This document shows, piece after piece, positions 4,325-26,145 of a stretch of 26,145 bases of DNA; the stretch's first letter is position 1; each line of letters starts with the position of its first letter. The notes beneath the pieces were generated by a model that was not told where the DNA came from, did no database searches, and was given only the letters and a program-made list of their open reading frames with translations. The position numbers and the translations under genes are program-made. This DNA comes from Leidyana gryllorum EB-2025a (lineage: Eukaryota; Protista; Apicomplexa), in contig JBLWGC010000107.1 in assembly GCA_048772705.1 (NCBI GenBank), positions 1 through 26,145 of the forward strand. The letters are read 5' to 3'.

Positions 4325-4500
4325 GGTACACTGTAAGTACACACACACACTCACTCGGGTTTTCCTAGGAGGGCGGGCAGACACAGACATAGACGGACAG
4401 AAAACAGGGAGATAGAGTAGGATGGTGAAACGCACTCAGAGGTCCCCGGTACAAACGACCGTAACGCCGAATCTAGAGGATGACGGCCCAGACTCTTACA
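4320..4500 (+). repeat. 3' LTR of element B (181 bp, TG...CA)
   Basis: Matches the reverse complement of 7282-7463 with about 2 substitutions and 1 indel seen by eye. Confidence 0.95.
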
Positions 4501-4664
4501 ATTAGCATAGTGAACCAATTGTATCAATATTACGAGTGATTGCTTGTGAGTAAGATGTAGGACGACAATGGAATGCGTTAATGCGGGGGAGGAGAGAAGA
4601 ATTGAAAGTAAAGTTGTAAGCTTAGTGGAACAGAATGAAAGTAGTATATGGCTTACGAACTACT

Positions 4665-4913
4665 CGCAGAGTAGTCGCAAACAAGGAGCAAACATCTCGC
4701 AAAGAACTGGCAAACCAGTCGCAAACAGGTGTCAAGAAAGTCGCAAACAAGTGGGAAACATGTGGCAAACAAGTTTGAAACAAGTGTCAAGTGAGTGGCA
4801 AACATGTGGCAAACAAGTAGCAAGTGAGTGGCAAACATGTGTCAAACAAGTAGGAAGTGAGTGGCAAAGATGTGGCAAACAAGTAGCAAACATGTGACAA
4901 ACAAGTGTCAAGT
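4665..4913 (-). repeat. Displaced, inverted continuation of the 11-bp minisatellite
   Basis: GCAAACAAGT/GCAAACATGT units are the reverse complement of the 1484-2431 array and degenerate toward ~4665. The left boundary is approximate. Confidence 0.92.
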
Positions 4914-6452
4914 CCCGAGTTTCAGGTCGGGTCGGAAGGCTGCGGTGAGGTCAGACCATTGCCCTAATAATTCGGGCGTCCAGTCGATATTTTTGCTCGA
5001 TTTTTTGTGTGTGCGTGTCAGTGCGTGGAGGTCGTTGGTAAGTTGGGCGAAGTTGGGTACGAACCGGGCGTAGTATGTCATTGCTCCTAGGTGTTTCTGG
5101 AGGTCGTGGACGGTGTGAGGTGGTCGGAGTTTGCGGAAGCAGTCCAGTCGTTGAGGTTCGGGTTTGAGGCCGTTGTGTGTGAGTGAGTGGCCGATGAATT
5201 CGACTTCTTTGATACAGAAGTGGGATTTGCGTGGGTGGATGTATAGTTGGTGTTCCTGGAGTGCCGAGAGGACTTTGTCGATGTGTTCCCGGTGCGTTTG
5301 TATATCTGTGCTATAGATCAAGATGTCGTCGATGTAGGCGAAGACGAAGTGGCCGATATAGGGCTTGAGTATCTCGGTAATGAATGCGACGAATGCGCTT
5401 GGTGCGTTTTTCAGTCCGAAGGGCATTACGTTGTATTCGTACTTCCCTAGTGGTGTTTGGAAGGCTGTGAAATGTCGTGATCCTTCTTCAATGAGTATCT
5501 GGTGGAAGCCTGACTGGAGGTCCAGTTTTGTGAAGACTGTGGCTCCCCGCATCTTAATGAGCATTTCTTCGATCCGCGGGAGTGGGTACGCGTAAAATTC
5601 CGTTCGGGCGTTGAGTCGTCGGTAGTTGACCACTAGTCGGGGTACTGGGGTGTCTTTCTTTGGTACTAGAAAGCAAGGTGAGCCCCACGCCGACTTGGAT
5701 GGTCGTATCATTCCTTTGGTGAGTAGATCCTCGATTTGTCGTTCTATCTCTTCGGAATCCGCTGATTTCAGGCTATATGGTTTGGCGCTGAACGGTTCCG
5801 CGGGTGTTGTTTTAATTTGGAAGTCGTGGAAACCTCTCGGTGGCGGGAGTCTTTGCGGCGTGGTGAAGAGCGTGGAGTATTTGTCAACGATCCATCCTTC
5901 CTCTGGCGGGATCTTGATGCATTGTTGGTCTGGTTTGGGGTCTTGTTGAGTGGTACTGAGCATGCACTGTGCCGGGATAATGTGGTTCTCAACCACTACT
6001 GGCTGTCCGTGGGTGTTGGTGCCGACGGCGAGTCCTGCTTGGGCAAAGCTCGGTAGCCCGATCACTGCGTCTAATCCATTAAGGTTGATGACGTGTAGTG
6101 TTAGATTTAGTGCCTTTCTTCCCGTTGTGAGTATCGTGGCTTGGACTGTACCCGCTGAAGTTGTGCTTCCTACTCCTGTTATCTTTATCGCTTCGTGCTG
6201 GTCTGGTTGGAGTTGGAGCCTTCTGGCTATGTGTTCTCCCAGCAGGTTGATCTCTGCTCCGCTGTCGGCTAATGTCAGGATGGGAGTGAGCTTGTGGTCG
6301 TTCTGAATGTGCCACCTAACTATTGCTCGTCGTTCTCTTCCATTCGTGTTGTTCCATAGCCACGCACTTGCTGTGGCTGTTGTCATTTCTCCCTTCGACT
6401 CGGGGCCTATTGTGCGGGTCGGGAGCGTTTCCGCGGCCTCTAGCGAAAATCC
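4914..6452 (-). pseudogene. pol: Element B pol 5' half: aspartic protease and reverse transcriptase, truncated at the inversion breakpoint
   Basis: LADSGAEIN; SAWGSPCFLVPKK, VVNYRRLN, TKLDLQSGFHQI, MPFGLKNAP, AYIDDILIYS. Confidence 0.95.
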
Positions 6453-7360
6453 TGAGTCAGCGTCGCTGCTTCGGTGATTCGCTCTTCCTCGTTCTCTCTT
6501 TCGCTGGCGAGGAAGGCTCGTCTCTGTGGTCCTGACGGGTTTCTGGGGTGTTGTCGCCTCAGTGGGCACTGTGGTGTTATGTGTCCGGGTTTGCCGCATA
6601 CGTAACAGAGTCCGTTCTTGCGGCAGTGGTCGCGTGTGTGTCGGTTGGTGGGTCTGGTCCATCCGGGGTAGGATTGGTGGGTATGGCTCGGTCTCATCGT
6701 TGCTTCGCGTCCTGTGATCATCACTCGTGTTGTTGGTTGTCGGTTTCGGCGCTAGGCTAGTTCGATGATGCATTGGGCCGCCTCCTCGAAGTCGCTCGGT
6801 TTTCTGGCGAGGAGTAGGGCCTGTTCGAAGTCTGGGAGTGCGTTTATGAAGATCTCCAAGCAGTCGGAGTCGGTGAGGTTGTGTATGCCCCTTCGTAAGT
6901 CGCGGGCTGTTCTGACGTATTCTTCGAGCCTCTCGGGGTGGGCCCGTAGGTTCAGGAACTGGGTGAGGTCAGTCTTTCCTGTGTCCGCAAACTCTCTGAG
7001 GAATTTCTCCTTGAAGTGTGGCCAGCTTGTCTCTCTAAGGCTATCACCGTTGCCTGGTCTATTCAGCCATTTGGTGGCGGATCCTTTCAGTGTGGCGCAG
7101 GCTATTCGGGTCTTGTCGGTTTCCTCTATCTGGAGGTTTCCGAATGCTGCTTCCAGTTCCTCGAGGTGTTGTCGTGGGTTTCCAGTGGCGTCGTAGCTGG
7201 CTACGAGTTGAGTGACCCATCTTATCCGCTTGAACAGGTGTTCGCAATTGTCGGTTCGTTGGAGTTTCGCACTGCTACCAGTGTAAGAGTCTGGGCCGTC
7301 ATCCTCTAGATTCGGCCTTACGGTCGTTTGTACCGGGGACCTCTGAGTGCGTTTCACCAT
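6440..7360 (-). pseudogene. gag: Element B gag with CCHC zinc knuckle, one in-frame TAG at 6752-6754
   Basis: ORFs 6752..7360 and 6440..6724 are in the same frame. Capsid-like LKGSATKW..SWPHFKEKFLREF; CYVCGKPGHITPQC. Confidence 0.9.
7268..7280 (-). promoter_or_regulatory. Primer binding site of element B (TGGTAGCAGTGCG), probably initiator tRNA-Met
   Basis: Begins 1 nt after the 5' LTR end with TGG, complementary to tRNA CCA. Confidence 0.85.
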
Positions 7361-7463
7361 CCTACTCTATCTCCCTGTTTTCTATCCGTCTATGTCTGTG
7401 TCTGCCCGCCCTCCTAGGAAAACCCGAGTGAGTGTGTGTGTGTACTTTACAGTGTACCTTACA
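7282..7463 (-). repeat. 5' LTR of element B (182 bp), contains the gag ATG at 7360
   Basis: Pair of 4320-4500; followed by the PBS. Confidence 0.95.
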
Positions 7464-7493
7464 CTAATTACCAGGTACGTGAAGACACTTCTC

Positions 7494-7588
7494 CTAACTG
7501 CTACCTTCTCCTCCCTCTCTATCTGTATCTCCTTCATCCTCCCTTACTGGACTCTGCTCTCCACCTCCCTCAGTAGCCCCGACCTTTC
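7494..7588 (-). pseudogene. Detached 3' end (31 codons + TAG) of the backbone gene at 17459-18725
   Basis: After removing element C and one CTTC copy the frame continues MPE-GKVGATEGGGEQSPVREDEGDTDREGGEGSS*. Confidence 0.75.
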
Positions 7589-7592
7589 CTTC

Positions 7593-7827
7593 TGTAAGTC
7601 TGGGGTTCTTCTGGGGCCGGTGCCTTGGCAGTTCTCTTAGCCTTCAAGGCAAATGATCTGGGAAGTATACTGGGCCAGTTGGTTCGTCTGGTCATGGTAA
7701 ATCCAGTTAACTAGTTGCGTGCGTGTGCTGTGTTTGTACCCACCGTGTCTCCGGCCGGGCGGTTAGTTACGTCATGCATATTAAAAAGGGTGGTTTCACA
7801 AGCTATCTGAGAGGTGTAATCCTTACA
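7593..7827 (-). repeat. 3' LTR of element C (235 bp)
   Basis: Direct repeat of 17224-17458 with about 2 substitutions; PPT GAGGGGAGGAG adjacent. Confidence 0.95.
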
Positions 7828-8816
7828 CTCCTCCCCTCGCCATTAGATCTTGACCTGATAGTTCTTCGTCTGTGAAAGGTACCCCCCGTTTCGTTCGATT
7901 CCACTCTTCTCTGTATGCAATGATGAGATCTAGCGCATCGGCGTCAAGTACGTTGTGGGCCGGTTCCCATGTGGCCTGCTCGTGTGGGTAATCTGTCCAC
8001 TTTATGAGGAATCGTAGTCCATGTCGGTCGTTGCTCTGAGCCAGTACCTTCTCCATTTGGAATATCTCCCCTGCTTCCTCTTCTTCGCCGCCAGTGTATT
8101 TCTTGAGTCTGGATATATGGAACTTATTCAGGCCCTGCCAGGCTTGTGGCATCGCTAGCTCGTATACGTCGGTCTCTAATACTCGTTTCACTCTGACTGG
8201 TCCCATGTACGCTTTCGTTAGTTTGTGTCGGGGTCCTCTCTTAAGTCCCTGGGTCCTGAGAAGGACTAGTTCTCCGACCTCGAACGATTCGTTGGCCCTG
8301 TGGCGGTCGTACGCGAGCTTCTGTTTGGACTGAGCCTGTCGGATGCGGTCCTGCATTATGCTGATCGACTGTGAGTGTAGCGTGAGTTCCGCGGTGGGCC
8401 CGGGGTCAAGTCCGAGATTGAGAGGGATCTTGGGGATGTATCCTCTCTCCGCTTCGAAAGGACTTATACCTGTTGACGCATTTGGCATTGCGTTGTACGC
8501 AAATTCGATGGCGGCTAGTCGAGTGGTCCATCTGGGGCCCACGTCCTCGCACACACAACGAAGCATTTGGATGACAGTTCGGTGTCCCCTTTCCAGTAGC
8601 CCGTTAGTTTGAGGGTGTGCTGCAGTAGTGGCTTTCAGAGTGATCGCGGCTGATTCGCAAAGTTGCTTCCACAGCTCGTTGAGCCACCGCGAGTCCCTGT
8701 CACGTACTATGACCGATGGGAATCCGTGTTCCCTAACGACTCTATTCATGAGTATGTTGGCGCAGTCTTTCGCCGTTGCGGTGATATAGCACGGCTCTAG
8801 GAGTAGTCTCCGCGTC
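7823..8816 (-). pseudogene. pol: Element C pol 3' segment: integrase core, GPY/F-like region, chromodomain
   Basis: In-frame continuation IIDRL|TRRLLLEPC; RDRDSRW, HPQTNGLLER, RFLIKWTDYPHEQATWEP; ends RGGV* in the LTR. Confidence 0.93.
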
Positions 8817-8944
8817 AGTCTTGTTGTGCTCCAGTGTGCAGCTTAGACGTGCGTGTACGACGCTGTGGGGCCTCCTGGGGGCTCCCCCACCCGTCCTCCA
8901 TCCTCGACCTGCCCTCACCCGTCACCTGGGGGTCTTGGCACAGT

Positions 8945-9016
8945 TGTCCGAGGTGGGATTCGATCCGCCGACCTGCGGGTCCCAAGTCCGAGTAGTTACC
9001 ACTGCACTACTGGATC
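8945..9016 (-). ncRNA. Degenerate tRNA-like unit 2 in G1 (Pol III type-2 promoter)
   Basis: A box TAGTGCAGTGG and B box GGATCGAATCC at tRNA spacing; acceptor stem imperfect. Confidence 0.65.
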
Positions 9017-9068
9017 ACAATACTAAGGGCAGCCATGTGCCGGTCGAGGTGGCTAGCCAAGGGCGAAG

Positions 9069-9141
9069 TGCAGGGCCGTGGATTCGATCCTGCGACCTCC
9101 AGGTTGCGAGCACAAGACACTTCCCATTGCACTAACTGGTA
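9069..9141 (-). ncRNA. Degenerate tRNA-like unit 1 in G1 (initiator-Met-like)
   Basis: A box TAGTGCAATGG; B box GGATCGAATCC. Confidence 0.65.
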
Positions 9142-9151
9142 CACCACAACA

Positions 9152-9364
9152 TGTAGTGTTGCTCTAATGGTCTGTCTACGGTTCGTCCTGATCTAAGTTC
9201 GGTCGGCATGCACAGTTCTGATCACTAAAAGGTAAGCCGGTTCAAAAGGGTAAGTCTATCTGTGTGTGTCCGTGTCTCCGTGCCGGCTGCCGGCCGGCCC
9301 CCCCGGAGACACAGACATGTTGTCCCCAGACTAGCTGCGGCTAGATGGGTACTGAAGCGCTACA
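9152..9364 (-). repeat. 3' LTR of element D (213 bp)
   Basis: Direct repeat of 13829-14041; TG...CA. Confidence 0.95.
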
Positions 9365-9374
9365 TCCCTCCCTC

Positions 9375-12300
9375 CTAAATATCTGTATATGGGTTGTGGG
9401 GGTGTCTCTCGTTCCATTCTGCCTTGAACGCCTGCACCAAATCCATTGCTGCTGCATCGATGATGGTGTCCAGGGGTTCCCAGGTGGCTTCTTGGTCTGT
9501 ATATCCCGCCCACTTAACCTTATATTCCGGTAGCCCTTCTTGGTTGATACGTTCGCCTAAAATCTTTTCCATCAGGTAAATGTCGGTGGGTTGGTTCGTC
9601 TGTCTGTCTGATCTATCCGAGTGCTGTTGGGGTGTTGCAGTGTTCTGATGATGCGGTTGCTTGAAGTGTTCCAGTCGTGAGGCGTGGAATTTGGGAAAAA
9701 TCTTCCAGGCGTCTGGTAGATCTAGTGTATATGTGTCGGTGTCGGTGGCTTCTACGATCGTAAAAGGGTCCACAATAGGGTAAAGCCAATTTGTTGTTCG
9801 GCACATGGATCAAGTTCTTCGTCTTCAGCAGTACTCGATCTCCAACCTTGAATGTGGTCTCTGCTCTACCTTGATCAGCTCCCAACTTCTGTCTGTCTGC
9901 TGCGGCGGACAATCGGTCCTTAGCTTCTTGTAGCTTCTGCAGGTATAATCTGAATGGTGTTGAACATGCTTTGATTGACGAGAGGTTGTCTTGTAGGAAT
10001 TGTGATCGCCCCGTGTCCAGTTCAAATGGGGTTGCATTCGTTGATGATTGTGTCGACGTGTTGTACGCGATCTCTACCGTATTGATGTGAGTACACCAAT
10101 TGGTTCCTAGTCCTCTCAGGGCGCATCTCAACATCTGTAGGATGGTCCTGTTTGCACGTTCTGTCAGACCGTTCGCTTGTGGGTGTGCCGCTGTTGTCAT
10201 TGCCAGATTAATGCTCAGATCTTTCATCAAGTGGTTCCAAAGGCCTGCCGTGAATCGAGGGTCGCGGTCGCTGATAATTTTGCGCGGTACCCCATGGATC
10301 TTGACAATGTTCTCTAGGAACAGTTTCGCGGCTTCTTCCGAGGTGATAGTTTTTTGACAGGGGATCATCCGGATCCGTCTCGTCATTCGGTCTATGACGA
10401 CCATTAAATAATCCAATCCTGTATTCCCATCTCTGGGTAGTTCCAAGAAGTCGATTCCTATCGATTCCCATGGGCTCGTTGGGTTGCAAATTGGATGGAG
10501 CAAGCCGTACGGTCTATGGCTTCGCTTTTTTGCCTTCTGGCACGTTGTACATCGGCGGCAGTATTCCGTGACGTCTGCCGTCAGACCTCTCCAGTTGAAT
10601 ATACTGCGGATTCTTGCTGTGGTTCGAGCGGGTCCCAGGTGGCCCGCCAGTTTTGAGTCGTGATTCTCCTTGATAATCTTTTCTATGAGGCATTGTTCCG
10701 CCGGAACTTCAATTGATCCGTCTGGTGTCACTGGTATTCCTTCTTGCCATTCGACTTCTCCACAAGTCCCTGCGTTCTCTTCGTTTCCTCTCCACGCAGT
10801 TCTCAACTCCTCTTCAATTGTGGGTCTGTCAATTTGGTCCTGTTCCAATTCCGTTTGTGTTGTCATAAACACACTTCCTTGCTTCCTCTCCTCGTCTTTT
10901 GTTTTCTGTGCCCGTGGCCGACTGAGTAAATCTGCAATGATGTTTTGAGTCCCTTCCAAATACTGTATCTCCAGCTGGAGTTCTCCCAGCGTCTGAAGCC
11001 ATCGGCTTTGCCTGTCGGATATCTGGGATTGCTTCAATAAGTGGGTCAACGGTTTGTGGTCGGTCCTCACAAGGATCTCCCGACCAATCAGCAAGTGTCG
11101 CCACTGTCTGCAAGCATAAACAATCGCCAGTAGCTCCCGTTAATGGGTTGGATATCTGCTTTCCGCTGGTGTGAGTACGCGAGACATGAATTCGATCGGT
11201 TTAATCCCTTCTGCCAAGGAGTACTCGTCCAATACAGCTCCTATGGCCTCCAAACTGGCGTCGGTGGTCAGCACCAAACTTGTGCAGCCTTTCGATGGAT
11301 ATCCCAGCACTGGGCACTTACACAATCCGTCCTTGAGCTCATCCATCGCTTGTTTCACCTCATCCGAGGCGGCTATCTTGTCATTTGGTCTTTTCAGTCC
11401 TTTCATTGCATCATATAGCGGTTTCGCTTTGCTCGCAAAGTTCTGGATGAATCTCCGATAAAAATTGAACATGCCTAAGACACTTTGCGTCTCCTTCAAT
11501 GTGGACGGTGTTGCCAACTGCTTCAGTGCCATCATTTTCTCTTCTACTGGATGAATCCCATTGCGGTCCAGTCTGTGCCCTAAGTATATCACCTTGTCCT
11601 TGAAGAAGTGGGATTTCCGCCTGTGGATAACGAGTTGATTGTTCATTAGTCGTGTTAGGACTTCCCTCAAATGTCGACGATGCTCTTCCCATGTCCTTGA
11701 GTAGATCAGAACATCATCTAGGTAGACAAAGACGTACTCGCCTATGATGTCCCTGAATATGGTGTACATTAATAACATGAATGTAGATGGGGCATTCATA
11801 AGGCCATTCGGCATCACCACCCATTCAAATAGTCCCCACGGGGTCGCGAATGCCGTCAGTGGGGCTGATTTTGGGTCCATTCGTACCTGATGGTACCCAC
11901 TTTTGAGGTCCAGAGTCGAGAATATAGTAGCTCCTTCCAGTTGGGAGAGCGCTTCGTCGATGGGTGGCATCGGGGACACTATCCGGACCGTTTCTTGATT
12001 TAATCGGCGGTAATCGCATACCAATCGAGGAATTTTGGTGTCTTTTTTTGGTACAAATAAGCAGGGTGATGACCATTGGGATGTGCTGGGTTGTATCTTC
12101 CCTTCCTTCAACAAGGTGAGTATTTGTTCCTTCAGCTCTCCGGCATAGTGCTGTGGTATTTTGTAAGGCTGCCTGGCAAATGGCGTCACGTGTTGTCCTT
12201 TGAGTTGTATGCTGTGGTCAATTCCTTTGCGGTACGGTGGTAAGGTTCCCTGGTCTTCGAATGCCATGTAGAAACATCGCTCAATCCAGTCTTCCTCGTC

Positions 12301-12846
12301 CGGTCGGTCCAAAGATGTGGTAATAATGGCATCCTTTTCGCCTCGTATGTTGTACACCGCTCCGCTAATGTGTGGTCTGAGCCATTCTGTAGGTTTCATG
12401 TTGGTATCAATGGGCAGCACTAATTCCTCTAGGACACACCAACGTTGATTCCGGTCGGTCCCTATCCAAAGCCCCAATCGTTGTATCACCGTTGTGGAGA
12501 TTATTAAGTCGTAAGGTAAATTGTCCAGTATCACGCACGAGATCTTAAGTTCCTGTCCTTTGGTGGTTTTGATGACCGCTTGTGTTGTTCCCCGGGTCTT
12601 CGTGGGTTCCGCTGATACTCCTCTGATCCGCATTGTGTCCTCTCCCACCGTTCCTCCTATTCTATTCACCACGTCCCGTGAGATGCAGTTGGTGTCGCTC
12701 CCTGTGTCAATTAGAACGCAGCAGGGTAAGATTGTCTCCTTCCCTGGTGCTCGGATCGTCCACGTTGTTTGGAGGGGTGGTTCGGGTCCTATAGCTGGGC
12801 ATCCGGAGTGAGTTCCCCTGACTCTTCCTGCCCAATCTGAAAATCC
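9375..12846 (-). pseudogene. pol: Element D pol (PR-RT-RH-IN-chromo) with a nonsense codon at 11140-11142 and a +1 frameshift near 9763
   Basis: LIDTGS, YLDD, LTTDAS, H*RELLAI (TAA at the conserved Glu), IGIDF, ISDRD, QANGLTER; GPF|TIVE frameshift in a T-run; EYKVKWAGYTDQEATWEP. Confidence 0.93.
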
Positions 12847-13886
12847 GACCCCTCCAAGGCGTGTACCCTCCCTTCTCTGCGGTCTGTGCGTTTTTGGCAT
12901 TGAGCCATCAAATGTCCTCGCTCCCCGCATGATCTGCATCTTCCTTCGGCCATACACTGGGCGTATGTGTACTTGCATTGCGGCCCCACTGATCCCCGTT
13001 GGTACCCTCTGGTTCCTTGCGTCGCCAGTACTCGCCCTTCCGCTCTGCGTAGATCTCTCCTTTCTGTCACTGTTGCATAAAGTAGCGCTCGTTCGCATAT
13101 GTTTTCGAATGTGGTTCCTATGCAGGTGGCTAAAGCCAGCTGGTCTTTCTCCGGCAAGCCCTGGAAAAATAGATTGATAGCAGAATTTTCCGACATCATC
13201 GGCAGTCCTCGCTTCAACTCCCTGCATTCCAACACGTAAGCTTGCATGTCCTGTCCTTTCCGCAGTTGGGTCCACTTTATTAGGTCGTCTTCGGCCTTAT
13301 TCCGAGCCCCGAATTCTCGGAGGAAGCTCTGTCGGAAGTTAGACCATGATCCTTGGACCAGATCATCGGCCTTTGCCAGATACCACCTCGCTGGCCCCCC
13401 GTCCATCCCCGAACATGTGGCTCTGATCATTTCTTCCTCCTCCGTTACCCCAAAGCCTTTGAATCGGGCTTCACAGCCATCGAGCCAGTCCCTCGCATCC
13501 GTGGTCTTGTTGGCTGTGAACAGCGGCTGTCGTTTCAGTGCCTGCTGGGCTGCTTCGGATATGCCTCGGTGAGTGTTAAACGGTTTCTTTGTTTGTTTCC
13601 CTATTTCAGTTGGGCGGTTAGTCCCTGGGTTCTTAGTGATCTGTTCTTCCATAGTTTCCATCCGAAGCGCTAATCTTTCAATCACTGTCGTAAGTTTCTC
13701 CACATCTGTCCTGAGTCGTTCCTCTGTGCTGGTCTGTTCTGTAGCCTCTGTCTGAGGTTCGTTTGTCGCGTGCATCGTATCCTGTAATTCGCTCATAGGT
13801 CCGTCCTCTGGCTGCGCACTGCTACCAGTGTAGTGTTGCTCTAATGGTCTGTCTACGGTTCGTCCTGATCTAAGTTCGGTCGGCAT
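12789..13886 (-). CDS. gag: Element D Gag with CCHC zinc knuckle
   Basis: Open 365-aa ORF; MPTELRSG start inside the LTR; GPARWY..SWSNFRQSFLREF; CRSCGERGHLMAQC. Confidence 0.92.
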   Translation of the reverse strand: MPTELRSGRTVDRPLEQHYTGSSAQPEDGPMSELQDTMHATNEPQTEATEQTSTEERLRTDVEKLTTVIERLALRMETMEEQITKNPGTNRPTEIGKQTKKPFNTHRGISEAAQQALKRQPLFTANKTTDARDWLDGCEARFKGFGVTEEEEMIRATCSGMDGGPARWYLAKADDLVQGSWSNFRQSFLREFGARNKAEDDLIKWTQLRKGQDMQAYVLECRELKRGLPMMSENSAINLFFQGLPEKDQLALATCIGTTFENICERALLYATVTERRDLRRAEGRVLATQGTRGYQRGSVGPQCKYTYAQCMAEGRCRSCGERGHLMAQCQKRTDRREGRVHALEGSDFQIGQEESGELTPDAQL

Positions 13887-14041
13887 GCACAGTTCTGATC
13901 ACTAAAAGGTAAGCCGGTTCAAAAGGGTAAGTCTATCTGTGTGTGTCCGTGTCTCCGTGCCGGCTACCGGCCGGCCCCCCCGGAGACACAGACATGTTGT
14001 CCCCAGACTAGCTGCGGCTAGATGGGTACTGAAGCGCTACA
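13829..14041 (-). repeat. 5' LTR of element D (213 bp), contains the gag ATG
   Basis: Followed by C + TGGTAGCAGTGCG PBS. Confidence 0.95.
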
Positions 14042-14046
14042 CAACA

Positions 14047-16418
14047 AGTCTGTCAATTATACTCATCACGCAATCGGGAGCTCCGTTCGTTTCCGGTGGA
14101 AGCTTCAGTAGATCAATCGATAGTTCCTGCCACGGAAGCTCTGGTGGGGCAATCGGGTTCAACAGTCCAAGGGGTTTAGATGTGCTCGTTTTTGACCTCT
14201 GGCATATCGGGCACGCTCTGCAGTATTGTCGAACGTCTTCGGTCACCCCCGGCCAGTTGAATTGTCCTCTGACTTTCAGAAGGGTCCTGTCGTGTGCTAG
14301 GTGGCCGGCGATGATGGAGCCATGGGATTCTCTGATGACGAGACGTCTCAGGTCTGCTTGATTAGGTATAAATAGTCGGCCAAATTCATCGTGAATCCAC
14401 TCTCCGTTTCGTTCAAAACCTTCGGGCGGTGTTTCCACCTGCCTCAGTGCCTCCTTAAGTTGCTTGGTGAAGTCTATTTCAGCTGAAAAGGTGGCGAGTA
14501 CTTCTGTCTTGGGTTGAATGGCTCCGGCGCCGCTGAGTAAGTCCGCCAGGACATTGTCCTTTCCTGGGATGTGGTCTATGGTGGCTGGGTACTGGGAGAT
14601 TTTGATCAGCCACCGTATGACCTTCGGGCTGAGAACTGTGCTCGTCTTCTGCAGTACCACCAAGGGTTTGTGGTCTGTGTGGATGTAAAAGTCGCGGCTC
14701 ATCAGGTAGTGCCTCCAACGCTTTAGCGCTGCCAGGATGGCCCACAACTCTCTCTCGTGAACCGCCCAGTTTGTCTGTGTTGGCGTGAGCCTGCAACTGA
14801 AATGCTCGATGATGCGTTTGGAGTCACCTCCATCCGTCCATTGTTCAAGTGTGCCCCCAACTGCAGTGTTGCTAGCGTCTGTGGTGACATGAAAAGGTAG
14901 TTCATCGTCTACCACCCGGAGGGTTAGGTCTGTTCCGAAGGCATCCGTCAGACGGTTCCAAGCCTCTTCTTTTTCCGTGGTCCATAAAATTTTGTCCGAC
15001 GGTTTTTTGAGTTGGTTGATGATCTCGTGGAACGGTATGGTTAGTTCCGCAAACTTCTGGATGTATTTCGCGTAGTAAGTCATTCCCCCAATTGCTCGTC
15101 TCAGTTCTCCCATTGTTGCATGCGGTTTCAGACGTTTGAACGCGTTCTGCCTCTCTGGGTTGGGTCTGATGCCGTGGTGATCAAGATGCTGTCCGATGAA
15201 GTCTACCTCGGTGAGGAAAAAGCTGGATTTCTTCGGGTGCACTTTGAGTTTATGTTCTTCTAATTTCTGCAGGATCGCTCGGAGATGTACGCGGTGTTGA
15301 GCTACAGATGGGCTATACACAAGTATGTCGTCAACATACGCGATGGCGCATCTCCCCAGCCACGGCTGGAGGATCTCCTCGATGAACGCCACAAAGGCCG
15401 GGGGAGCATTCCTCAGTCCGAAGGGGAGTACCCGCCATTCAAATTTGCCCACAGGTGAGGAGAAGGCTGTCAAATGATAGCATTGTTCACGTAGGAGTAT
15501 CTGGTGGTACCCAGACTGAAGATCCAGTTTGGAGAATATGCGCGCTTTCCTCAGTTCGGGGGCGGCCAGATCGGCACGAGGAATTGGGTAGGCGTAAGTG
15601 ATTGTTGCGTCATTCAATTTCTTGTAGTTGATCACAAGTCGGGGTGTCGGCGTGTCCTTCTTGGGGACCAGGAAGCACGGGGCACCCCATTCCGACTTGG
15701 ACCTCTGGATTTTCCCTTGAGCTTCTAGTTCCGCTAGTTGTCTCGTCATTTCCTGTTTGTTTTGTTCGGAACTTGCGTATGGTCGGTCGAATGATGGTAT
15801 GGTTCCGGGTTTCAGTTGTATGTCAAAGTCATGGAAGCCCCTTGATGGGGGGAGTGCTATATTTGGCTTGAAGAGCCCTCCGAAATCTGATAAGATCCAT
15901 TCTTCCTCTATCGGGGTTTTGAGTGTCACTGCTGTTGCCATGTGTATCTGGCCAGGGATTGAGTCCCGGCCTTGCTTCTGAATGGAGGCTTGTTCCAAGA
16001 TAGTGAGTTTCCCTTTGGAGTCTGTCCCTATGGCAAGTTGTAATCCCATGATTGTTTCTATCCCAAGAATGGCATCGTACGGTGTGATGTCCGCTACTAC
16101 GAAGCAAAGGTCGAAGGTTTGGTGAGCTTGTGTGAGCAGTGTGGCTGTCACTGTACCCTGACTCTGCTGTTGTCCGATGCCGTGCAGCGTGAGCGTGTTG
16201 TTCTTGTCGGGCTCCAATTTGAGGTATGACGCCATGTCTGGGCTCAAAATATTCACTTCGGCGCCTGTGTCCACAAGGCATAAGGCCGTGGTTTGGCCCT
16301 GCGGGCTTCTTATCTGCCACGTGACCGCTGCTCTAGATTGTGTTCCTATCCTGAATAGGTCAGCTACCGTTTGGAGCCCCACATCTGGGTGAGCAGGTGG
16401 GGCTCTTTTCAAAAATCC
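14047..16418 (-). pseudogene. pol: Element C pol 5' segment: PR, RT, RNase H, integrase N-terminus, interrupted by insertion
   Basis: LVDTGAEVN, YVDD, VTTDAS, HERELWAI, H..GH..CRACPICQ, LSIDL; breaks at SIIDRL. Confidence 0.95.
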
Positions 16419-19797: not shown

Positions 19798-19918
19798 CCG
19801 GCCAGAGCCGGTCCGCCATTTGTCTGTGTCTCGGTGCCCGGCCGGCACCGGCACGAGACGGAGACGGGATCAGACAGACACGCGTGTGCTTACGTTTTTG
19901 AGTTACTTGACAACGGAG

Positions 19919-20889
19919 ATGAACGATCAACCAGGATTAGTCCTACGAAATGGAAAGCAGATTAGCCTAGTAGATCCAGCTACAGACTTACCCCCACCGG
20001 GTTATACTGGTAGCAGTGCGTGTCAACCAGCACTGGGCGAGGAACCAGAAACGGCAACGGATTTGGACGAAGGCGCCAGGCCGCAGAACACTCACAAGCA
20101 AACCGACCTGGCTAATGAACCACTGGAGCCGACGGACACAGCCTTACGTCTGATGGGATGGATTCGCACGACCGTTCAGGTGGCGGGATCCTATGATGGC
20201 AATTCAGAACCACTTGTTCACCTCGACACACTCGAGAACTGTTTCAGGAACGCAGGCCTCCCAGTCAGGCATTGGACAGCGGTGGCCTGTGGGACCTTCA
20301 GAGGGGGAGCGTCGTCGTGGGCGAACGCGGTCAACATGGACATTCGCCATATGGAGTGGGCAGCGTTCCGCAGAATGGTAACAACCGAATTCGAATCGGA
20401 CAAGCGAGGCAGCCTCGCACGACTTGTGGCCCTACGACCGGAGGAGGCAGGGATCCGTCAGTTTGCCTTAGCATTTCGACAAGAGCGGCGCATGATTCGC
20501 AACATTCCGGAGGCGGACATGGTGGATTTGTTCCTATCAAGACTCCCAAAAGCAGAACAGCTCGCGATACGAGGCAGAAACCCGCAATCGGTGGCCGAGG
20601 CTGTATCGCTGACGCTGGTGCTCTGCCCACAGGGAGCGATGGACACCAGGACAGTATTGGTTGCGACCCGCCGGCGCGTGGGGTCCAGAACCCTCACACT
20701 CGAGAACATTGCAGCAAGCATTAGTTGTGCTACATCTGCGGACAAGGGGGACACCTATCCAACAAGTGCCCAAAACGCGGAAACTCAGGGCGACCTACAC
20801 ACCCACAGCGCAAAGCTTTCCCAGCCAGACCCGACATCTCGGTGGAGGCGGCGATAGAGGAAGAAGCGGAAGTGGATTCGGATTTTTAG
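19919..20889 (+). pseudogene. gag: Element E gag with a 1-nt deletion near 20684 and TAG at 20722-20724
   Basis: MNDQPGLVLRNG start in the LTR; capsid-like region. The alternative frame gives QNPHTREHCSKH*LCYICGQGGHLSNKC...VDSDF*. Confidence 0.88.
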
Positions 20890-23800
20890 ATCAGGCCCTC
20901 GGTGGGCCTGACGCATGCTTCACAGCCACAGACTGGCGCGGCGCTCAGCGCGCAGGATGGACAGCCACAATGGAGTGGGAGATGACCAGCACAAAGGGAG
21001 GGCACGTTAGACGAACAACAGCGCTGATCGACTCTGGATCAGAATTAAACATTATGACACCGAATCTAGCAAAGAGCTTGGAACTGGAACTGCGGCCATC
21101 CGAGACTCACCGAATAGACGGGATGGGCTCCGCAAGATGCGAAGGGGAAGTGGAGGCGTGCGTGAAGACAAAATTCGGCACTTACGGACCGACTCGCTTC
21201 GCGGTGGTGCACAATGACCACTACGAAGCCATCATAGGGTTACCACTGATACACAGCATACCGCTGGTCCTCGGAACCGACGGTAACGGACGGATGGTGA
21301 TCGCGGAGGGCTCTATCCTTGAAAGCGAGACAACCTTTATAACAAAGCCAATACAACTGACCTTACCGGAGCCAAAACCTGAAATAAACGGACCGAATGG
21401 GTGGATACTCGAACGATTTGGACAGCTCTTCCGAAACAAACTCCCATTCCCACCGGACCGGGCCTTCCATAATTTTCAAATCAAAGTCTTACCAAACGCG
21501 AAACCATATGCGGGACGGCCGTACAGTGGAAAGGGAGACACTCAGGAACTCCGCAGGCAGGTAGAAGAATTGCTGGCCGAGGGTAAGGTCGTCAAGTCCA
21601 AATCGGAATGGTCAGCGCCATGCTTTCTCGTGCCAAAGGCCGACACAGCGGTACCTCGCATGGTTACCAATTACAAAGCGTTAAATGACCAAACCGTGAA
21701 CTACGCCTACCCTAGCACAACGACCGAAGAGAACTTGTCCGTTCTGCGAGGAGCGAAGGTGTTCTCGAAGATCGATTTGAAATCAGGGTTTCATCAGATA
21801 AGGATTGAACCGGAGTCGCAACAGTTCACGGCGTTCGTCACACCGTTCGGTAAGTACCAGTACACGGTTATGCCGTTTGGGTTGAAGAATGCTCCTTGTG
21901 CCTTCATTGCGCTCATGACGGAGGTCTTGGACGGACTGATCGGAGACTGCGTGGTTGCTTATGTGGACGATCTATTGGTGTACAGTGCGACATGGGAAGA
22001 GCACAAGACGCACCTAGAGAGAGTCTTCCAGAGACTAGGCGAGCATCAGCTATATATCAACCCCAGCAAGTCGAAGTTCTACCTGACGGAAGTGGAGTTT
22101 ACGGGACACAGAGTGACACCAGAAGGCATTCGGCCAGCAAAGACGAAAGTGGACTTCTTTCGCGCCAGACCACCCCCAGAAACGATCAAAGAATTATCAA
22201 CCCTGGTTGGAGCGATGAGCTACTATTCGCGATTCATCCCGCTGTTCGCACAGAAGGTTCGCACCTTCCACGGAATTATAGCAGCAAGTGATAAGCCGAG
22301 GGCGACGATCGAGTGGACGGAGGAGCGGAAACAAGCGTGGCGGGAGCTTACGGCGTGTTTCAACGACGAGAGACAACTAGGGCACATGGACCGCAGACTA
22401 CCACTCGTAGTCACAACGGATGCGTCCAATGAAGCGATAGGCGCCACACTGGAACAGAATCAGCCAGAGGGACGAGTACCCCTCGAGTTCATGAGTTGCC
22501 GACTCACAGCGGCACAGAAGGCCTGGCCTGTGCACGAAAGAGAGCTGTACGCGATTGAGTGCGCACTCAAACGCTGGAAACATTACTTGATCATGAAACC
22601 TTTCTCCGTTTTCACGGACCATAAGCCGTTGGCGACCCTGGCAAAGGCTAAGAATGTGTCGGACCGCGTGGTGAGAACCTTGCTCAAGATCTCTCAGTTC
22701 CCGTGTCGGATTGACTATATAAAGGGAACTGAAAATCATCTAGCGGACCTGCTCAGCAGGCCTCCACAGCGATTGTGCCACATGGCACAGTACCAGACGC
22801 ACGAAGGCGAATTCATGCTACTGCTACAACGGTTAAGCGGACCACTTCAGCCAGTCGGGGACCAGATCAAGCACCAAGGACTGGTGTACGATAGCGAAGA
22901 CCGAATAATAGTGCCGGACAACCGAGAAGTGAAGCTGCGAATACTGGAAGAATGCCACAGCTCACTGCTAGGGGGACACATGGGAGCGGATCGCACCTTG
23001 AGAAGGGTGACTGCCATGTTCTTCTGGCCTCACGTGGCCCGTGATGTGCGGGAATACTGCCGCTCGTGTGACACATGTCAGCGAGTCAAAGCGACGAACC
23101 AAAAACAGGTCGGACTACTACACCCGATACCACCACCCAGCGGACCGTGGTTAGAGGTCAGCTTGGACCTGGTATGCCTACCAGAAGATAGGAGTCGGGG
23201 CTCAGACAGCCTGATGACGATAATCGACCGATTTTCTCGACGAATGATACTGATCCCCTGCCGAAGAGATATCTCGGCCACAGAATCGGCCCAACTCCTC
23301 ATAGAATACCTCATCAGGCCTCACGGGTGTCCGGAATCGATCATTTGTGATAGAGACTCTCGCTGGTGCTCAGACGTGTGGACAGAAATGTTGAAGATCA
23401 TGGGAACCAAACTAAGACCTAGCACCGCCTTCCATCCCCAAACAAACGGCATGGTCGAAAGGGGGCATCGAACGGCATTGCAAGTACTCAGAACGGTTTG
23501 TACCGAGATGGGAGACAATTGGGCGCAACTAATCCCAACGGTTGAGATGGCGATCAATTCAGCATTGAACGAATCCATTGGAATGTCTCCGCACGAGGCC
23601 GACACGGGAGTACCATTCAGGACCCCTCTAGCAGCAGCCATACCTAGCAATCCGGACAGAGCCCGAAAACCCCTCCAGCTGGAAGCGGAACGCTTACAAG
23701 AGATAACGGATCGAATTCGAGCAGCACAGAACAAGCAGAAGACGGCGGCGGATGCGAATCGGAGGAACGAATGTCACCAGGAAGGCGACTATGTACTATT

Positions 23801-24242
23801 GCCCGCAAAGCAGCTCAAAGGACTACGCAGAACGAAACTATCCCACAACTACATCGGGCCCTTCAGGATAAACGCCTGCATTCCAGGAGACGTCTACCAA
23901 CTTGAATTGCCCAGTAGCTTGCAAGTGCATAATAGATTCCATGTGAGTCGCCTAAGGCGCTATAACGGGCCGTCACCGGAGAACCCACAACCGGTTTACC
24001 AAATGGAAGCAGTCAAGGGCGAGAAACTCAGACAGGGCACCTACCTGTGGCTGATAAAATGGAGAGGTTACCCGGACTCGGAGAACACCTGGGAACCGTT
24101 GTCCGTAATCCGAGAAGGCGACGCGGTGGACCTCGTACTGGACTTTAGGAGGGAGTATAATGCGAGACCGAGCACTAAGGTACCCTACACCGCGGAACAA
24201 CTCGAAGGACGAGACTTAGATCTCGGGCCGGGAGGAGTGTAA
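20880..24242 (+). CDS. pol: Element E Pol, intact: PR-RT-RNase H-integrase-chromodomain (expressed by -1 frameshift)
   Basis: LIDSGS, YVDD, VTTDAS, H..GH..CRSCDTCQ, VSLDL, ICDRD, QTNGMVER, GPFRI, LWLIKWRGYPDSENTWEP; ends PGGV* in the LTR. Confidence 0.96.
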   Translation, partial: GFLDQALGGPDACFTATDWRGAQRAGWTATMEWEMTSTKGGHVRRTTALIDSGSELNIMTPNLAKSLELELRPSETHRIDGMGSARCEGEVEACVKTKFGTYGPTRFAVVHNDHYEAIIGLPLIHSIPLVLGTDGNGRMVIAEGSILESETTFITKPIQLTLPEPKPEINGPNGWILERFGQLFRNKLPFPPDRAFHNFQIKVLPNAKPYAGRPYSGKGDTQELRRQVEELLAEGKVVKSKSEWSAPCFLVPKADTAVPRMVTNYKALNDQTVNYAYPSTTTEENLSVLRGAKVFSKIDLKSGFHQIRIEPESQQFTAFVTPFGKYQYTVMPFGLKNAPCAFIALMTEVLDGLIGDCVVAYVDDLLVYSATWEEHKTHLERVFQRLGEHQLYINPSKSKFYLTEVEFTGHRVTPEGIRPAKTKVDFFRARPPPETIKELSTLVGAMSYYSRFIPLFAQKVRTFHGIIAASDKPRATIEWTEERKQAWRELTACFNDERQLGHMDRRLPLVVTTDASNEAIGATLEQNQPEGRVPLEFMSCRLTAAQKAWPVHERELYAIECALKRWKHYLIMKPFSVFTDHKPLATLAKAKNVSDRVVRTLLKISQFPCRIDYIKGTENHLADLLSRPPQRLCHMAQYQTHEGEFMLLLQRLSGPLQPVGDQIKHQGLVYDSEDRIIVPDNREVKLRILEECHSSLLGGHMGADRTLRRVTAMFFWPHVARDVREYCRSCDTCQRVKATNQKQVGLLHPIPPPSGPWLEVSLDLVCLPEDRSRGSDSLMTIIDRFSRRMILIPCRRDISATESAQLLIEYLIRPHGCPESIICDRDSRWCSDVWTEMLKIMGTKLRPSTAFHPQTNGMVERGHRTALQVLRTVCTEMGDNWAQLIPTVEMAINSALNESIGMSPHEADTGVPFRTPLAAAIPSNPDRARKPLQLEAERLQEITDRIRAAQNKQKTAADANRRNECHQEGDYVLLPAKQLKGLRRTKLSHNYIGPFRINACIPGDVYQLELPSSLQVHNRFHVSRLRRYNGPSPENPQPVYQMEAVKGEKLRQGTYLWLIKWRGYPDSENTWEPLSVIREGDAVDLVLDFRREYNARPSTKVPYTAEQLEGRDLDLGPGGV

Positions 24243-24473
24243 GGGGTTACACAATTATCAGCGGCCGGCCAGAGCCGGTCCGCCATTTGTCTGTGTCTCG
24301 GTGCCCGGCCGGCACCGGCACGAGACGGAGACGGGATCAGACAGACACGCGTGTGCTTACGTTTTTGAGTTACTTGACAACGGAGATGAACGATCAACCA
24401 GGATTAGTCCTACGAAATGGAAAGCAGATTAGCCTAGTAGATCCAGCTACAGACTTACCCCCACCGGGTTATA
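24238..24473 (+). repeat. 3' LTR of element E (~236 bp)
   Basis: Starts TGTAAG after the PPT; appears identical to 19798-20006 over the shared part. Confidence 0.92.
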
Positions 24474-24494
24474 CAAGTCGTTTGTGTTGTGGTG

Positions 24495-24567
24495 TACCAG
24501 TTAGTGCAATGGGAAGTGTCTTGTGCTCGCAACCTGGAGGTCGCAGGATCGAATCCACGGCCCTGCA
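24495..24567 (+). ncRNA. Degenerate tRNA-like unit 1 (initiator-Met-like)
   Basis: A box 24502-24512, B box 24546-24556. GGAAGTGT..GCTCGCAACCTGGAGGTCG..GGATCGAA parallels eukaryotic tRNAi-Met, including the ATCG T-loop. Confidence 0.65.
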
Positions 24568-24619
24568 CTTCGCCCTTGGCTAGCCACCTCGACCGGCACA
24601 TGGCTGCCCTTAGTATTGT

Positions 24620-24691
24620 GATCCAGTAGTGCAGTGGTAACTACTCGGACTTGGGACCCGCAGGTCGGCGGATCGAATCCCACCTCGGACA
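24620..24691 (+). ncRNA. Degenerate tRNA-like unit 2
   Basis: A box 24627-24637, B box 24670-24680; AGGTC variable loop; TGG at the anticodon position. Confidence 0.65.
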
Positions 24692-24834
24692 ACTGTGCCA
24701 AGACCCCCAGGTGACGGGTGAGGGCAGGTCGAGGATGGAGGACGGGTGGGGGAGCCCCCAGGAGGCCCCACAGCGTCGTACACGCACGTCTAAGCTGCAC
24801 ACTGGTCTGCAGTGCCACGACATGTTCGGCGACT

Positions 24835-24907
24835 GCGCCAATAGCACAATGGTAATGACTACGGACTTATGTTCTGAAGGTCGGTGGTTCGAGTCTCCCC
24901 GCGGACA
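24835..24907 (+). ncRNA. Degenerate tRNA-like unit 3 (paralogue of unit 2)
   Basis: A box TAGCACAATGG 24842-24852, B box GGTTCGAGTCT 24886-24896; shares CGGACTT, AGGTCGG and the CGGACAA end with unit 2. Confidence 0.6.
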
Positions 24908-25054
24908 AGCCTGACTCCACGGCATTGTCAACGGGACTGGCTGCTTAAGGTAAGTCTTATCCATACGTGTGCAGGTGAAGGCTGTACACGCGCGCGCCAA
25001 GACATTTGAGCCTTAGCTGTAGCACATAGGTAGCGTTAGGTCCAACTTAGATGC

Positions 25055-25059
25055 TTTTT
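25055..25059 (+). terminator. Candidate Pol III terminator (T5) in G2
   Basis: First run of 4 or more T on the sense strand downstream of the three tRNA-like units. Confidence 0.45.
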
Positions 25060-25122
25060 AGAAAAGGAAAAAAGGGGGAACGAACTCGACAGTCGGCACT
25101 CACCCTGGAGCACAACAGTTTG

Positions 25123-25388
25123 AACTCGTACATATCGTTCCAGCGCAATTGCACGCAAGATTGATGCAATTGGTCCGTTCTACTTATCACATTCACGATA
25201 GGTTGCTAACTATTCCATCAATAAATAAATCTCACAGAAACAATGGGTACGGGGAAGCGCCCGAGCGAAGCGACAAGGGCGCTCCACACACCCCATCAAT
25301 ACTTCTTCACGCACACTATTACTCAACGTACATATCAGCCTTAACATCCCGCTCGTACACTAACAATCCGAATACCCATAACTCTTAG
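25123..25388 (+). pseudogene. Possible 3' end of a backbone ORF (helicase-tail-like)
   Basis: With G2 removed, the frame is open from the E junction: KSFELVHIVPAQLHARLMQLVRSTY...; weak support. Confidence 0.25.
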
Positions 25389-26145
25389 CATATATACACT
25401 CTCTCAATGTTTTATAGCAAACAACTGACCACCACCCTCTTACCACACCTCGAACTACATCACAATTGTCAATATACTCCTATTAACCTACCTATCATTA
25501 GCCAAATTCATGTCGCCCGAATCAACACTCAAATCCTATGCATAACTTGACTCCATCCGCATATTCTTACAAATTCCCATTCACTCCAATAAATAATGTC
25601 CACGATACGCATTGGACTCATGACATTCTTCTCAACACTCTCAATTCAACTTGAATCTCATTGATTCCCCTATATCTAGCATTACAAGCTTTTATACGTC
25701 TACAAATACTCCCTCAATCAACGAGCGAATCGCTAACTCACTCTAGACCCCTCACAGCCTAACAGACAAACCATCTAAACCAATATCACTCACACATAAC
25801 CTTCCAAGTTGCTCCACATTCACTTTAGCAAACTGAGCATACTACACATCACAGCACAGTTACCAAAATACACGCCATACACTCATACAATCATGCATCT
25901 CCAGCTCATATAGTCTCACAAATCAATACATAACAAGCACGATACCTGTCAACATACTAAGCAACACAACTACATCGTCACAGTCTTTTATTAGCACAAT
26001 ACACACCACATCAGACCTTACTTGCGCACGCTACAGCAACCGCAACGTGTAGAGAATTGAAAGCTAAACATTCGCAAACACGCAAACACAGTACAATTCA
26101 GCGATAAACAAGCACATAAACCACATAATCCAAAAGCAAACAGCA

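Follow-up and report, generated by a model that had tools for sequence, protein, structure and literature searches.

The 26,145-nt stretch of contig JBLWGC010000107.1 of the apicomplexan Leidyana gryllorum EB-2025a (assembly GCA_048772705.1) that we analysed (the window) contains a short sequence, G2, that looks as if an integrase had inserted it and that also resembles tRNAs in three places. What kind of mobile element is this, and which polymerase makes its RNA? The original prediction, made from the letters of the window, held that G2 is a non-coding mobile element, built from tandem tRNA-derived Pol III promoters, that makes a Pol III RNA of roughly 570 nt. That interpretation is partly supported by our analysis: the LTR-type nature of the sequence and its tRNA-like units hold, whereas a non-autonomous, Pol III-spread element does not. 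The features of G2 itself are as follows.

24480..24484, no strand: GTTTG, left target-site duplication of G2, single at empty paralogous sites
24485..25117, plus strand: G2, read here as a 633-bp solo LTR of a G-family Ty3/gypsy chromovirus, 96-100% identity to 14 full-length copies
25055-25059, plus strand: T5, the only T5 run of the LTR, at which Pol III might stop short of the LTR end
25118..25122, no strand: GTTTG, right target-site duplication of G2, single at empty paralogous sites

Every descriptive point of the prediction is confirmed. G2 has 7-bp inverted ends of the integrase type, TGTTGTG at 24485-24491 and CACAACA at 25111-25117. In at least 10 paralogues of the host repeat, H, the site is empty, with a single uninterrupted GTTTG. 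Just two ORFs occur in G2 (105 and 119 aa, both on the minus strand); neither gave a match in a Pfam search, in keeping with the predicted lack of a credible ORF. The T5 near the 3' end is indeed single, and no other run of four or more T residues was found in the G LTR.

The window holds one other copy of G, and both copies have been disturbed or approached by further retrotransposons:

8822..9151, minus strand: G1, second solo LTR, 330 bp, found by self-comparison of the window
9152..14041, minus strand: E1, nested chromovirus with 213-bp LTRs 99.5% identical, inserted into G1 bases 1-5
19798..24473, plus strand: E2, chromovirus with truncated 5' LTR, its 3' LTR ending 11 bp upstream of G2
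24474-24478: CAAGT, duplication of E2
25118..26145, plus strand: repeat H, host of the G2 and E2 insertions, 47 genome matches

The match to G1 is inverted (8831-9151) and 100% identical over 321 nt, after which G1 (9151->8822) continues into the last 9 bases of G. G1 equals G2 minus 303 bp (unit 3, see below, and the tail), lost between two CTGG motifs. Its own 5-bp duplication, AGACT at 8817-8821 and 14047-14051, is visible only when the nested E1 is removed; with this step, the predicted target-site duplication is present at both copies. This part of the prediction is supported: G was inserted by an integrase, is of LTR type and, as described below, contains three tRNA-derived units with good A- and B-box matches.

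We searched the genome (15.5 Mb, 237 contigs) for further copies. It contains 14 full-length G LTRs of 633-640 bp that are 96-100% identical to G2; some of these represent one site seen more than once, either on redundant contigs or because a tRNA array was segmentally duplicated. At least eight independent insertions are solo LTRs, each with a different perfect 5-bp duplication. The same G insertion sites, with identical flanks, occur on two contigs each (C99:1-1673 and window 24473-26145; C98 and C66; C187 and C68). Judging from these flanks, the assembly holds redundant contigs, whether haplotigs or collapsed repeats, and raw G copy counts therefore exceed the true number of insertions.

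Contig 43 carries a full-length element of 6.2 kb (C43:173686-179925, equal to L024 2687-8926) in which two G LTRs in direct orientation, 5.6 kb apart, enclose a primer-binding site (PBS), gag, pol and a polypurine tract (PPT), in that order. Two nucleotides separate the 5' LTR from the PBS, which complements the 3' end plus CCA of the genome's tRNA-Ala(AGC). gag (3357-4355 in L024 coordinates) encodes 332 aa; pol (4352-7894), in the -1 frame, encodes 1180 aa with the domain order PR-RT-RNaseH-IN-chromodomain, and Pfam finds RVT_1, RT_RNaseH, Integrase_H2C2, rve and Chromo in that sequence. The PPT is a purine tract directly before the 3' LTR. An AUG start of gag inside the G LTR was considered and rejected, since the LTR has an in-frame stop and the first ATG comes after the PBS. 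The element thus has direct LTRs around PBS-gag-pol-PPT, a pol of gypsy order with a chromodomain, TG...CA ends and 5-bp duplications, as expected of a Ty3/gypsy chromovirus. The 5' and 3' LTRs are ~3% different and the 5-mers on either side of the element do not match (GTTCC and GCTGT), so it may be a recombinant of two elements. Apart from this one full match, the internal region is represented in the genome by one 389-bp fragment at 98% identity.

These copies bear directly on the claim that G is a non-coding, non-autonomous mobile unit, either TRIMp3/Helenus-like or of a new family, that spreads via a Pol III transcript. Most G copies are monomers with their own 5-bp duplications, and the LTR holds tRNA-like units as in Helenus (PMC10886601), both of which would suit such a unit. 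However, the pattern of monomer plus duplication is identical for solo LTRs, and on C43 the sequence flanks a complete gag-pol with PBS and PPT. None of about 15 G copies has the structure of a TRIM, in which two LTRs enclose a short non-coding core of only PBS and PPT. The claim is contradicted by the C43 element, of which G is the LTR and which is an autonomous chromovirus; a match of this kind, to the ordinary LTR of a family, is what the original prediction had itself named as evidence against it. Since no short-core copy was found and gag-pol on C43 is flanked by G, we interpret G2 as a solo LTR.

The distribution of T-runs points the same way. Read along its sense strand, the full element has its first T-runs at LTR position 577 (the T5, downstream of all three units) and in gag (a T6). 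Both would stop Pol III, so the genomic RNA of the G element is most probably a Pol II product. A Pol III RNA started from unit 1 would end at the T5, short of the LTR end and the PBS; it could not prime reverse transcription of the LTR type and would not serve as its template. The predicted Pol III RNA of ~570 nt therefore fails as a transposition intermediate, and we regard spread of a non-autonomous G by this route as highly improbable.

Our preferred reading, to which we assign a probability of about 0.88, is that G2 is the solo LTR of a chromovirus that is replicated through Pol II and whose LTR has recently gained, and has probably retained, tRNA-like units. A G-family Ty3/gypsy chromovirus integrated into repeat H, creating the 5-bp GTTTG duplication, and later recombination between its LTRs would have removed the coding part and left one LTR of 633 bp. 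The 5' two-thirds of the LTR, where the three units lie, is presumably U3. The units would derive from a tRNA-related sequence, such as a pseudo-tRNA from the tRNA arrays of this genome or a tRNA-derived SINE, and would have been taken up recently in the lineage and partly multiplied by internal duplication. The element presumably replicates via a Pol II genomic RNA like other LTR retrotransposons, and the units have probably been kept as part of the regulatory region of the LTR.

The units were located with R1, a covariance model with cloverleaf that was built from 42 aligned tRNAs of this genome and run over the entire window without filters:

24499-24569, plus strand: unit 1, A-box-like TAGTGCAATGG, B-box-like GGATCGAATCC; R1 18.7 bits, E 3e-4
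24620-24691, plus strand: unit 2, boxes TAGTGCAGTGG / GGATCGAATCC; R1 25.5 bits, E 2e-6
24831-24907, plus strand: unit 3, boxes TAGCACAATGG / GGTTCGAGTCT; R1 22.8 bits, E 1.5e-5

R1 finds exactly these three units in G2, all on the plus strand and within 410 bp, and it also matches units 1 and 2 in G1. Their scores amount to between a third and a half of what real tRNAs reach (45-77 bits); pseudo-tRNAs inside arrays score 20-24 bits. Unit 1 aligns to model positions 5-67 and has, in the T-loop, 9 nt where the model has 2. Unit 2 is matched over the full length of the model with 8 of 21 pairs non-canonical; in unit 3 the figure is 4 of 21. With so many non-canonical pairs the units are tRNA-like without an intact cloverleaf, which bears out the prediction of three degenerate units that keep A and B boxes. 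The box matches are good and the spacing of the boxes is 43-44 nt, as in the real tRNAs of this genome; since R1 finds the units largely through the A- and B-box positions, the quality of the boxes is in part a bias of detection.

Could the resemblance be a chance match of a GC-rich LTR to short A- and B-box motifs? ARAGORN reported no tRNA in the window, Rfam returned nothing for 24400-25200 at the gathering score or at E ≤ 10, and no unit forms a cloverleaf at or above the threshold of the Rfam family RF00005 that would mark a tRNA gene. Local alignments of the units to single tRNAs extend over just 19-22 nt, the T-arm. Findings of this kind would fit a chance match. Such a match is hard to reconcile with three full- or near-full-length R1 matches on one strand in 410 bp (E 2e-6 to 3e-4), given that the best score in the rest of the 26 kb is 8 bits, and we consider a chance origin the least probable of the alternatives weighed here. 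A lack of any covariance-model signal had been named beforehand as evidence against tRNA-derived units; such a signal is absent with Rfam and present with the genome-specific model.

Units 2 and 3 are 61% identical, and the best real tRNA tested is 55-57% identical to either. This suggests that the two units arose by internal duplication. Naming a parent tRNA was attempted and rejected: the best identities (54-57%, background mean 49% between unrelated tRNAs) are no better than those of unrelated tRNA pairs. In a blast search of the genome, units 2 and 3 were found only in G copies and in one diverged relative on contig C194, and no free SINE or source locus was detected. The insertion sites of G make one route of capture plausible. 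Five of nine independent insertions lie inside tRNA arrays, which would give ready access to a pseudo-tRNA or a tRNA-derived repeat. G copies are either 77-690 bp from the nearest tRNA or inside tRNA genes. The arrays can be dense, as on contig C66 with 31 tRNAs in 10 kb.

Several observations on these arrays were made in passing. In C66:10000-33000 they are of mixed orientation, with 31 and 21 tRNA calls per 10 kb, and ARAGORN labels one call, with the anticodon CTA, 'Pyl'. Where arrays have been segmentally duplicated, the G copies in them were duplicated too. Two tRNA genes are interrupted by independently inserted G solo LTRs (C71:32761-33399; C68:13964-14603, equal to C187:9365-10004), and removing G and one copy of the duplication restores an intact tRNA-Pro(TGG) and tRNA-Gln(CTG). 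In both split tRNAs the duplication corresponds to tRNA positions 30-34, in the anticodon stem/loop, and the relative orientations are opposite. Positions 30-34, between the A and B boxes, may thus be a preferred integration point of G (n = 2). At ~119.4 and 122.9 kb of C43 (L025 2390-2470 and 2562-2599), beside a tRNA-Gly(TCC), G-like pieces correspond to G positions 55-123 and 14-51 (96-97% identity). They face opposite ways, are separated by ~100 bp and recur in a 3.5-kb tandem duplication of the tRNA array. These pieces may represent either a G fragment that was rearranged or a remnant of the sequence from which unit 1 arose.

The proximity of E1 and E2 to the two G copies raises the further possibility that G serves as a mobile landing pad to which its Pol III-like 5' unit draws other retrotransposons, much as Ty3 is drawn to real tRNA genes. 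The geometry fits such a model. The duplication of E1, TGTTG at 9147-9151 and 14042-14046, is bases 1-5 of G1, and the 3' LTR of E1 adjoins G1; the duplication of E2 occupies positions 7-11 bp upstream of G2. Counted from position 1 of unit 1, the two duplications are at about -10..-6 (E1) and -21..-17 (E2), and both elements have the orientation of the adjoining G copy. On the other side, no element sits at the 5' edge of any of the other G copies, of which at least eight are independent, and a copy of repeat H lacking G has an E1-family element inserted ~30 bp from the corresponding position. Pol III-directed targeting by E1 and E2 was rejected, because other copies of their families have no tRNA within 1.5 kb and no tRNA-like sequence detectable with R1. 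The E1-family insertion into a G-free H makes it seem that H itself is an insertion hot spot, which accounts for the adjacency of E2 and G2 without any contribution from G. A landing-pad role for G is accordingly unlikely.

Repeat H is preceded by a satellite of 11-bp period and has received three different LTR-element insertions within ~45 bp: E2 at CAAGT and G2 at GTTTG in the window copy, and an E1-family element at GAGCA in the copy in the C201:64997 region. E1 and E2 have a common PBS, TGGTAGCAGTGCG (window 13815-13828 and 20008-20020), which resembles a PBS of the initiator-tRNA-Met type; the G family uses tRNA-Ala. The LTR of E2 apparently ends in TA, not CA.

If the units neither move the element nor attract others, are they of any use to it? 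Across an alignment of 13 G copies, the three units (224 nt) contain 4 variable sites and the rest of the LTR (409 nt) contains 39 (Fisher p = 1e-4); unit 2 is invariant. This is a hint that favours constraint on the units, probably in the active lineage. With just four variable unit sites, boxes and stems are inseparable in such a comparison. The single relative at 82% identity, on C194, shows a different picture. Its units are no more conserved than its spacers, the boxes of units 1 and 2 are degraded, and unit 3 is the only one that R1 still detects (21.5 bits). Further afield, elements in metagenome assemblies whose Gag is 45-52% identical over most of its length have no tRNA-like unit on the four contigs concerned, and an 18-mer conserved in three diverged versions of G gave chance matches only against metagenome contigs. 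From the Gag relatives that lack units, together with the decay on C194, we infer that the units are a recent and lineage-specific acquisition.

The metagenome relatives come from ENA and Logan contigs of ~6.1 kb (L122-L126), in which the element is circularly permuted and runs from the pol 3' end through LTR and gag to the pol 5' end. Between pol and gag, inside or beside the LTR, they have a 346-aa ORF with no Pfam match.

Compatible with, and additional to, the reading of G2 as a solo LTR is the idea that the units are working Pol III/TFIIIC modules in the LTR of an autonomous element. They would then make an LTR RNA of ~570 nt or, bound by TFIIIC but not productively transcribed, form barriers between the LTR promoter and the heterochromatin that the chromodomain of the element seeks. 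In yeasts, tRNA genes and TFIIIC sites act as chromatin barriers. The box matches and their tRNA-like spacing, a roughly five-fold lower variability of the units compared with the rest of the LTR, and the position of the sole T-run downstream of all three units are consistent with working modules. The degraded boxes of units 1 and 2 in the 82% relative, the metagenome relatives without any unit and the part that detection bias plays in the good boxes speak against it. Binding of TFIIIC or Pol III by the units is plausible, yet we hold working modules to be a possibility with the odds against it. The fuller proposal, that the chromovirus keeps three such modules as a heterochromatin barrier, a promoter aid or a source of LTR RNA, must be put more tentatively still.

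G combines traits of three known groups of elements. The closest parallel in the LTR comes from terminal-repeat miniature elements. Kojima 2024 (PMC10886601) described two kinds of TRIM, Helenus and Ajax, whose LTRs include tRNA-like and 5S-like sequence, respectively, and proposed to unite Helenus with Cassandra and Ajax, both 5S, as TRIMp3. The precedents given in the original prediction need correcting to this extent: Cassandra does carry 5S-derived sequence, whereas the tRNA family is Helenus and not Ajax. Helenus and Ajax are non-coding and 311-1263 bp in total, and the longest Helenus LTRs named have 321-323 bp (PMC10886601). Within TRIMp3, transcription from the internal Pol III promoter has been validated for Cassandra only (PMC10886601). 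G shares with Helenus an LTR that includes tRNA-derived sequence with A and B boxes (here three R1 matches), TG...CA ends, 5-bp duplications and many solo LTRs, and in both the tRNA-like part is unlikely to encode a working tRNA. However, Helenus has its tRNA-like sequence in the short LTRs of a non-coding element, whereas G has three units in an LTR of 633-640 bp that belongs to a 6.2-kb gag-pol element. In Kojima's argument, the autonomous partners of these elements have to rely on Pol II promoters and are not expected to have LTRs of this kind; he also remarked that "not a few" Repbase LTRs resemble parts of tRNAs (PMC10886601).

With the chromoviruses G has in common the PR-RT-RNaseH-IN-chromodomain order, a PBS complementary to a tRNA, a PPT, 5-bp duplications, nested insertion in repeat-rich DNA and solo LTRs formed by LTR-LTR recombination. 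The LTRs of the neighbouring chromoviruses E1 and E2 (213 and ~237 bp) are about a third as long as the G LTR, whose extra length holds the units. A third comparison is with LTR elements that target tRNA genes, such as Ty3 of S. cerevisiae. Tj1 of S. japonicus (PMC4600332) and DGLT-A of Dictyostelium (PMC5006619) are also of this type. Like them, G is a Ty3/gypsy element associated with tRNA genes and is frequent in tRNA arrays. The tRNA-gene-targeting elements integrate at a constant distance upstream of their target genes and contain no tRNA-like sequence, whereas G shows no such fixed spacing and carries the units.

So far, tRNA- or 5S-derived promoters in LTRs have been characterized only for the miniature, non-coding Cassandra, Helenus and Ajax. 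A tRNA-like feature in an LTR is already known; what is new here is a coding chromovirus with three such units. If the units are passengers, the finding is mainly a matter of annotation, as G LTRs seed tRNA-like pseudo-hits and should be masked. If they work as modules, the G element would be the first of the 'p3' type with coding capacity, and Helenus-type miniatures could plausibly have arisen from such a state. Binding of Pol III factors by the units would show how miniature elements of this kind could originate, and would provide a natural case for the role of tRNA-like modules in an element that seeks heterochromatin.
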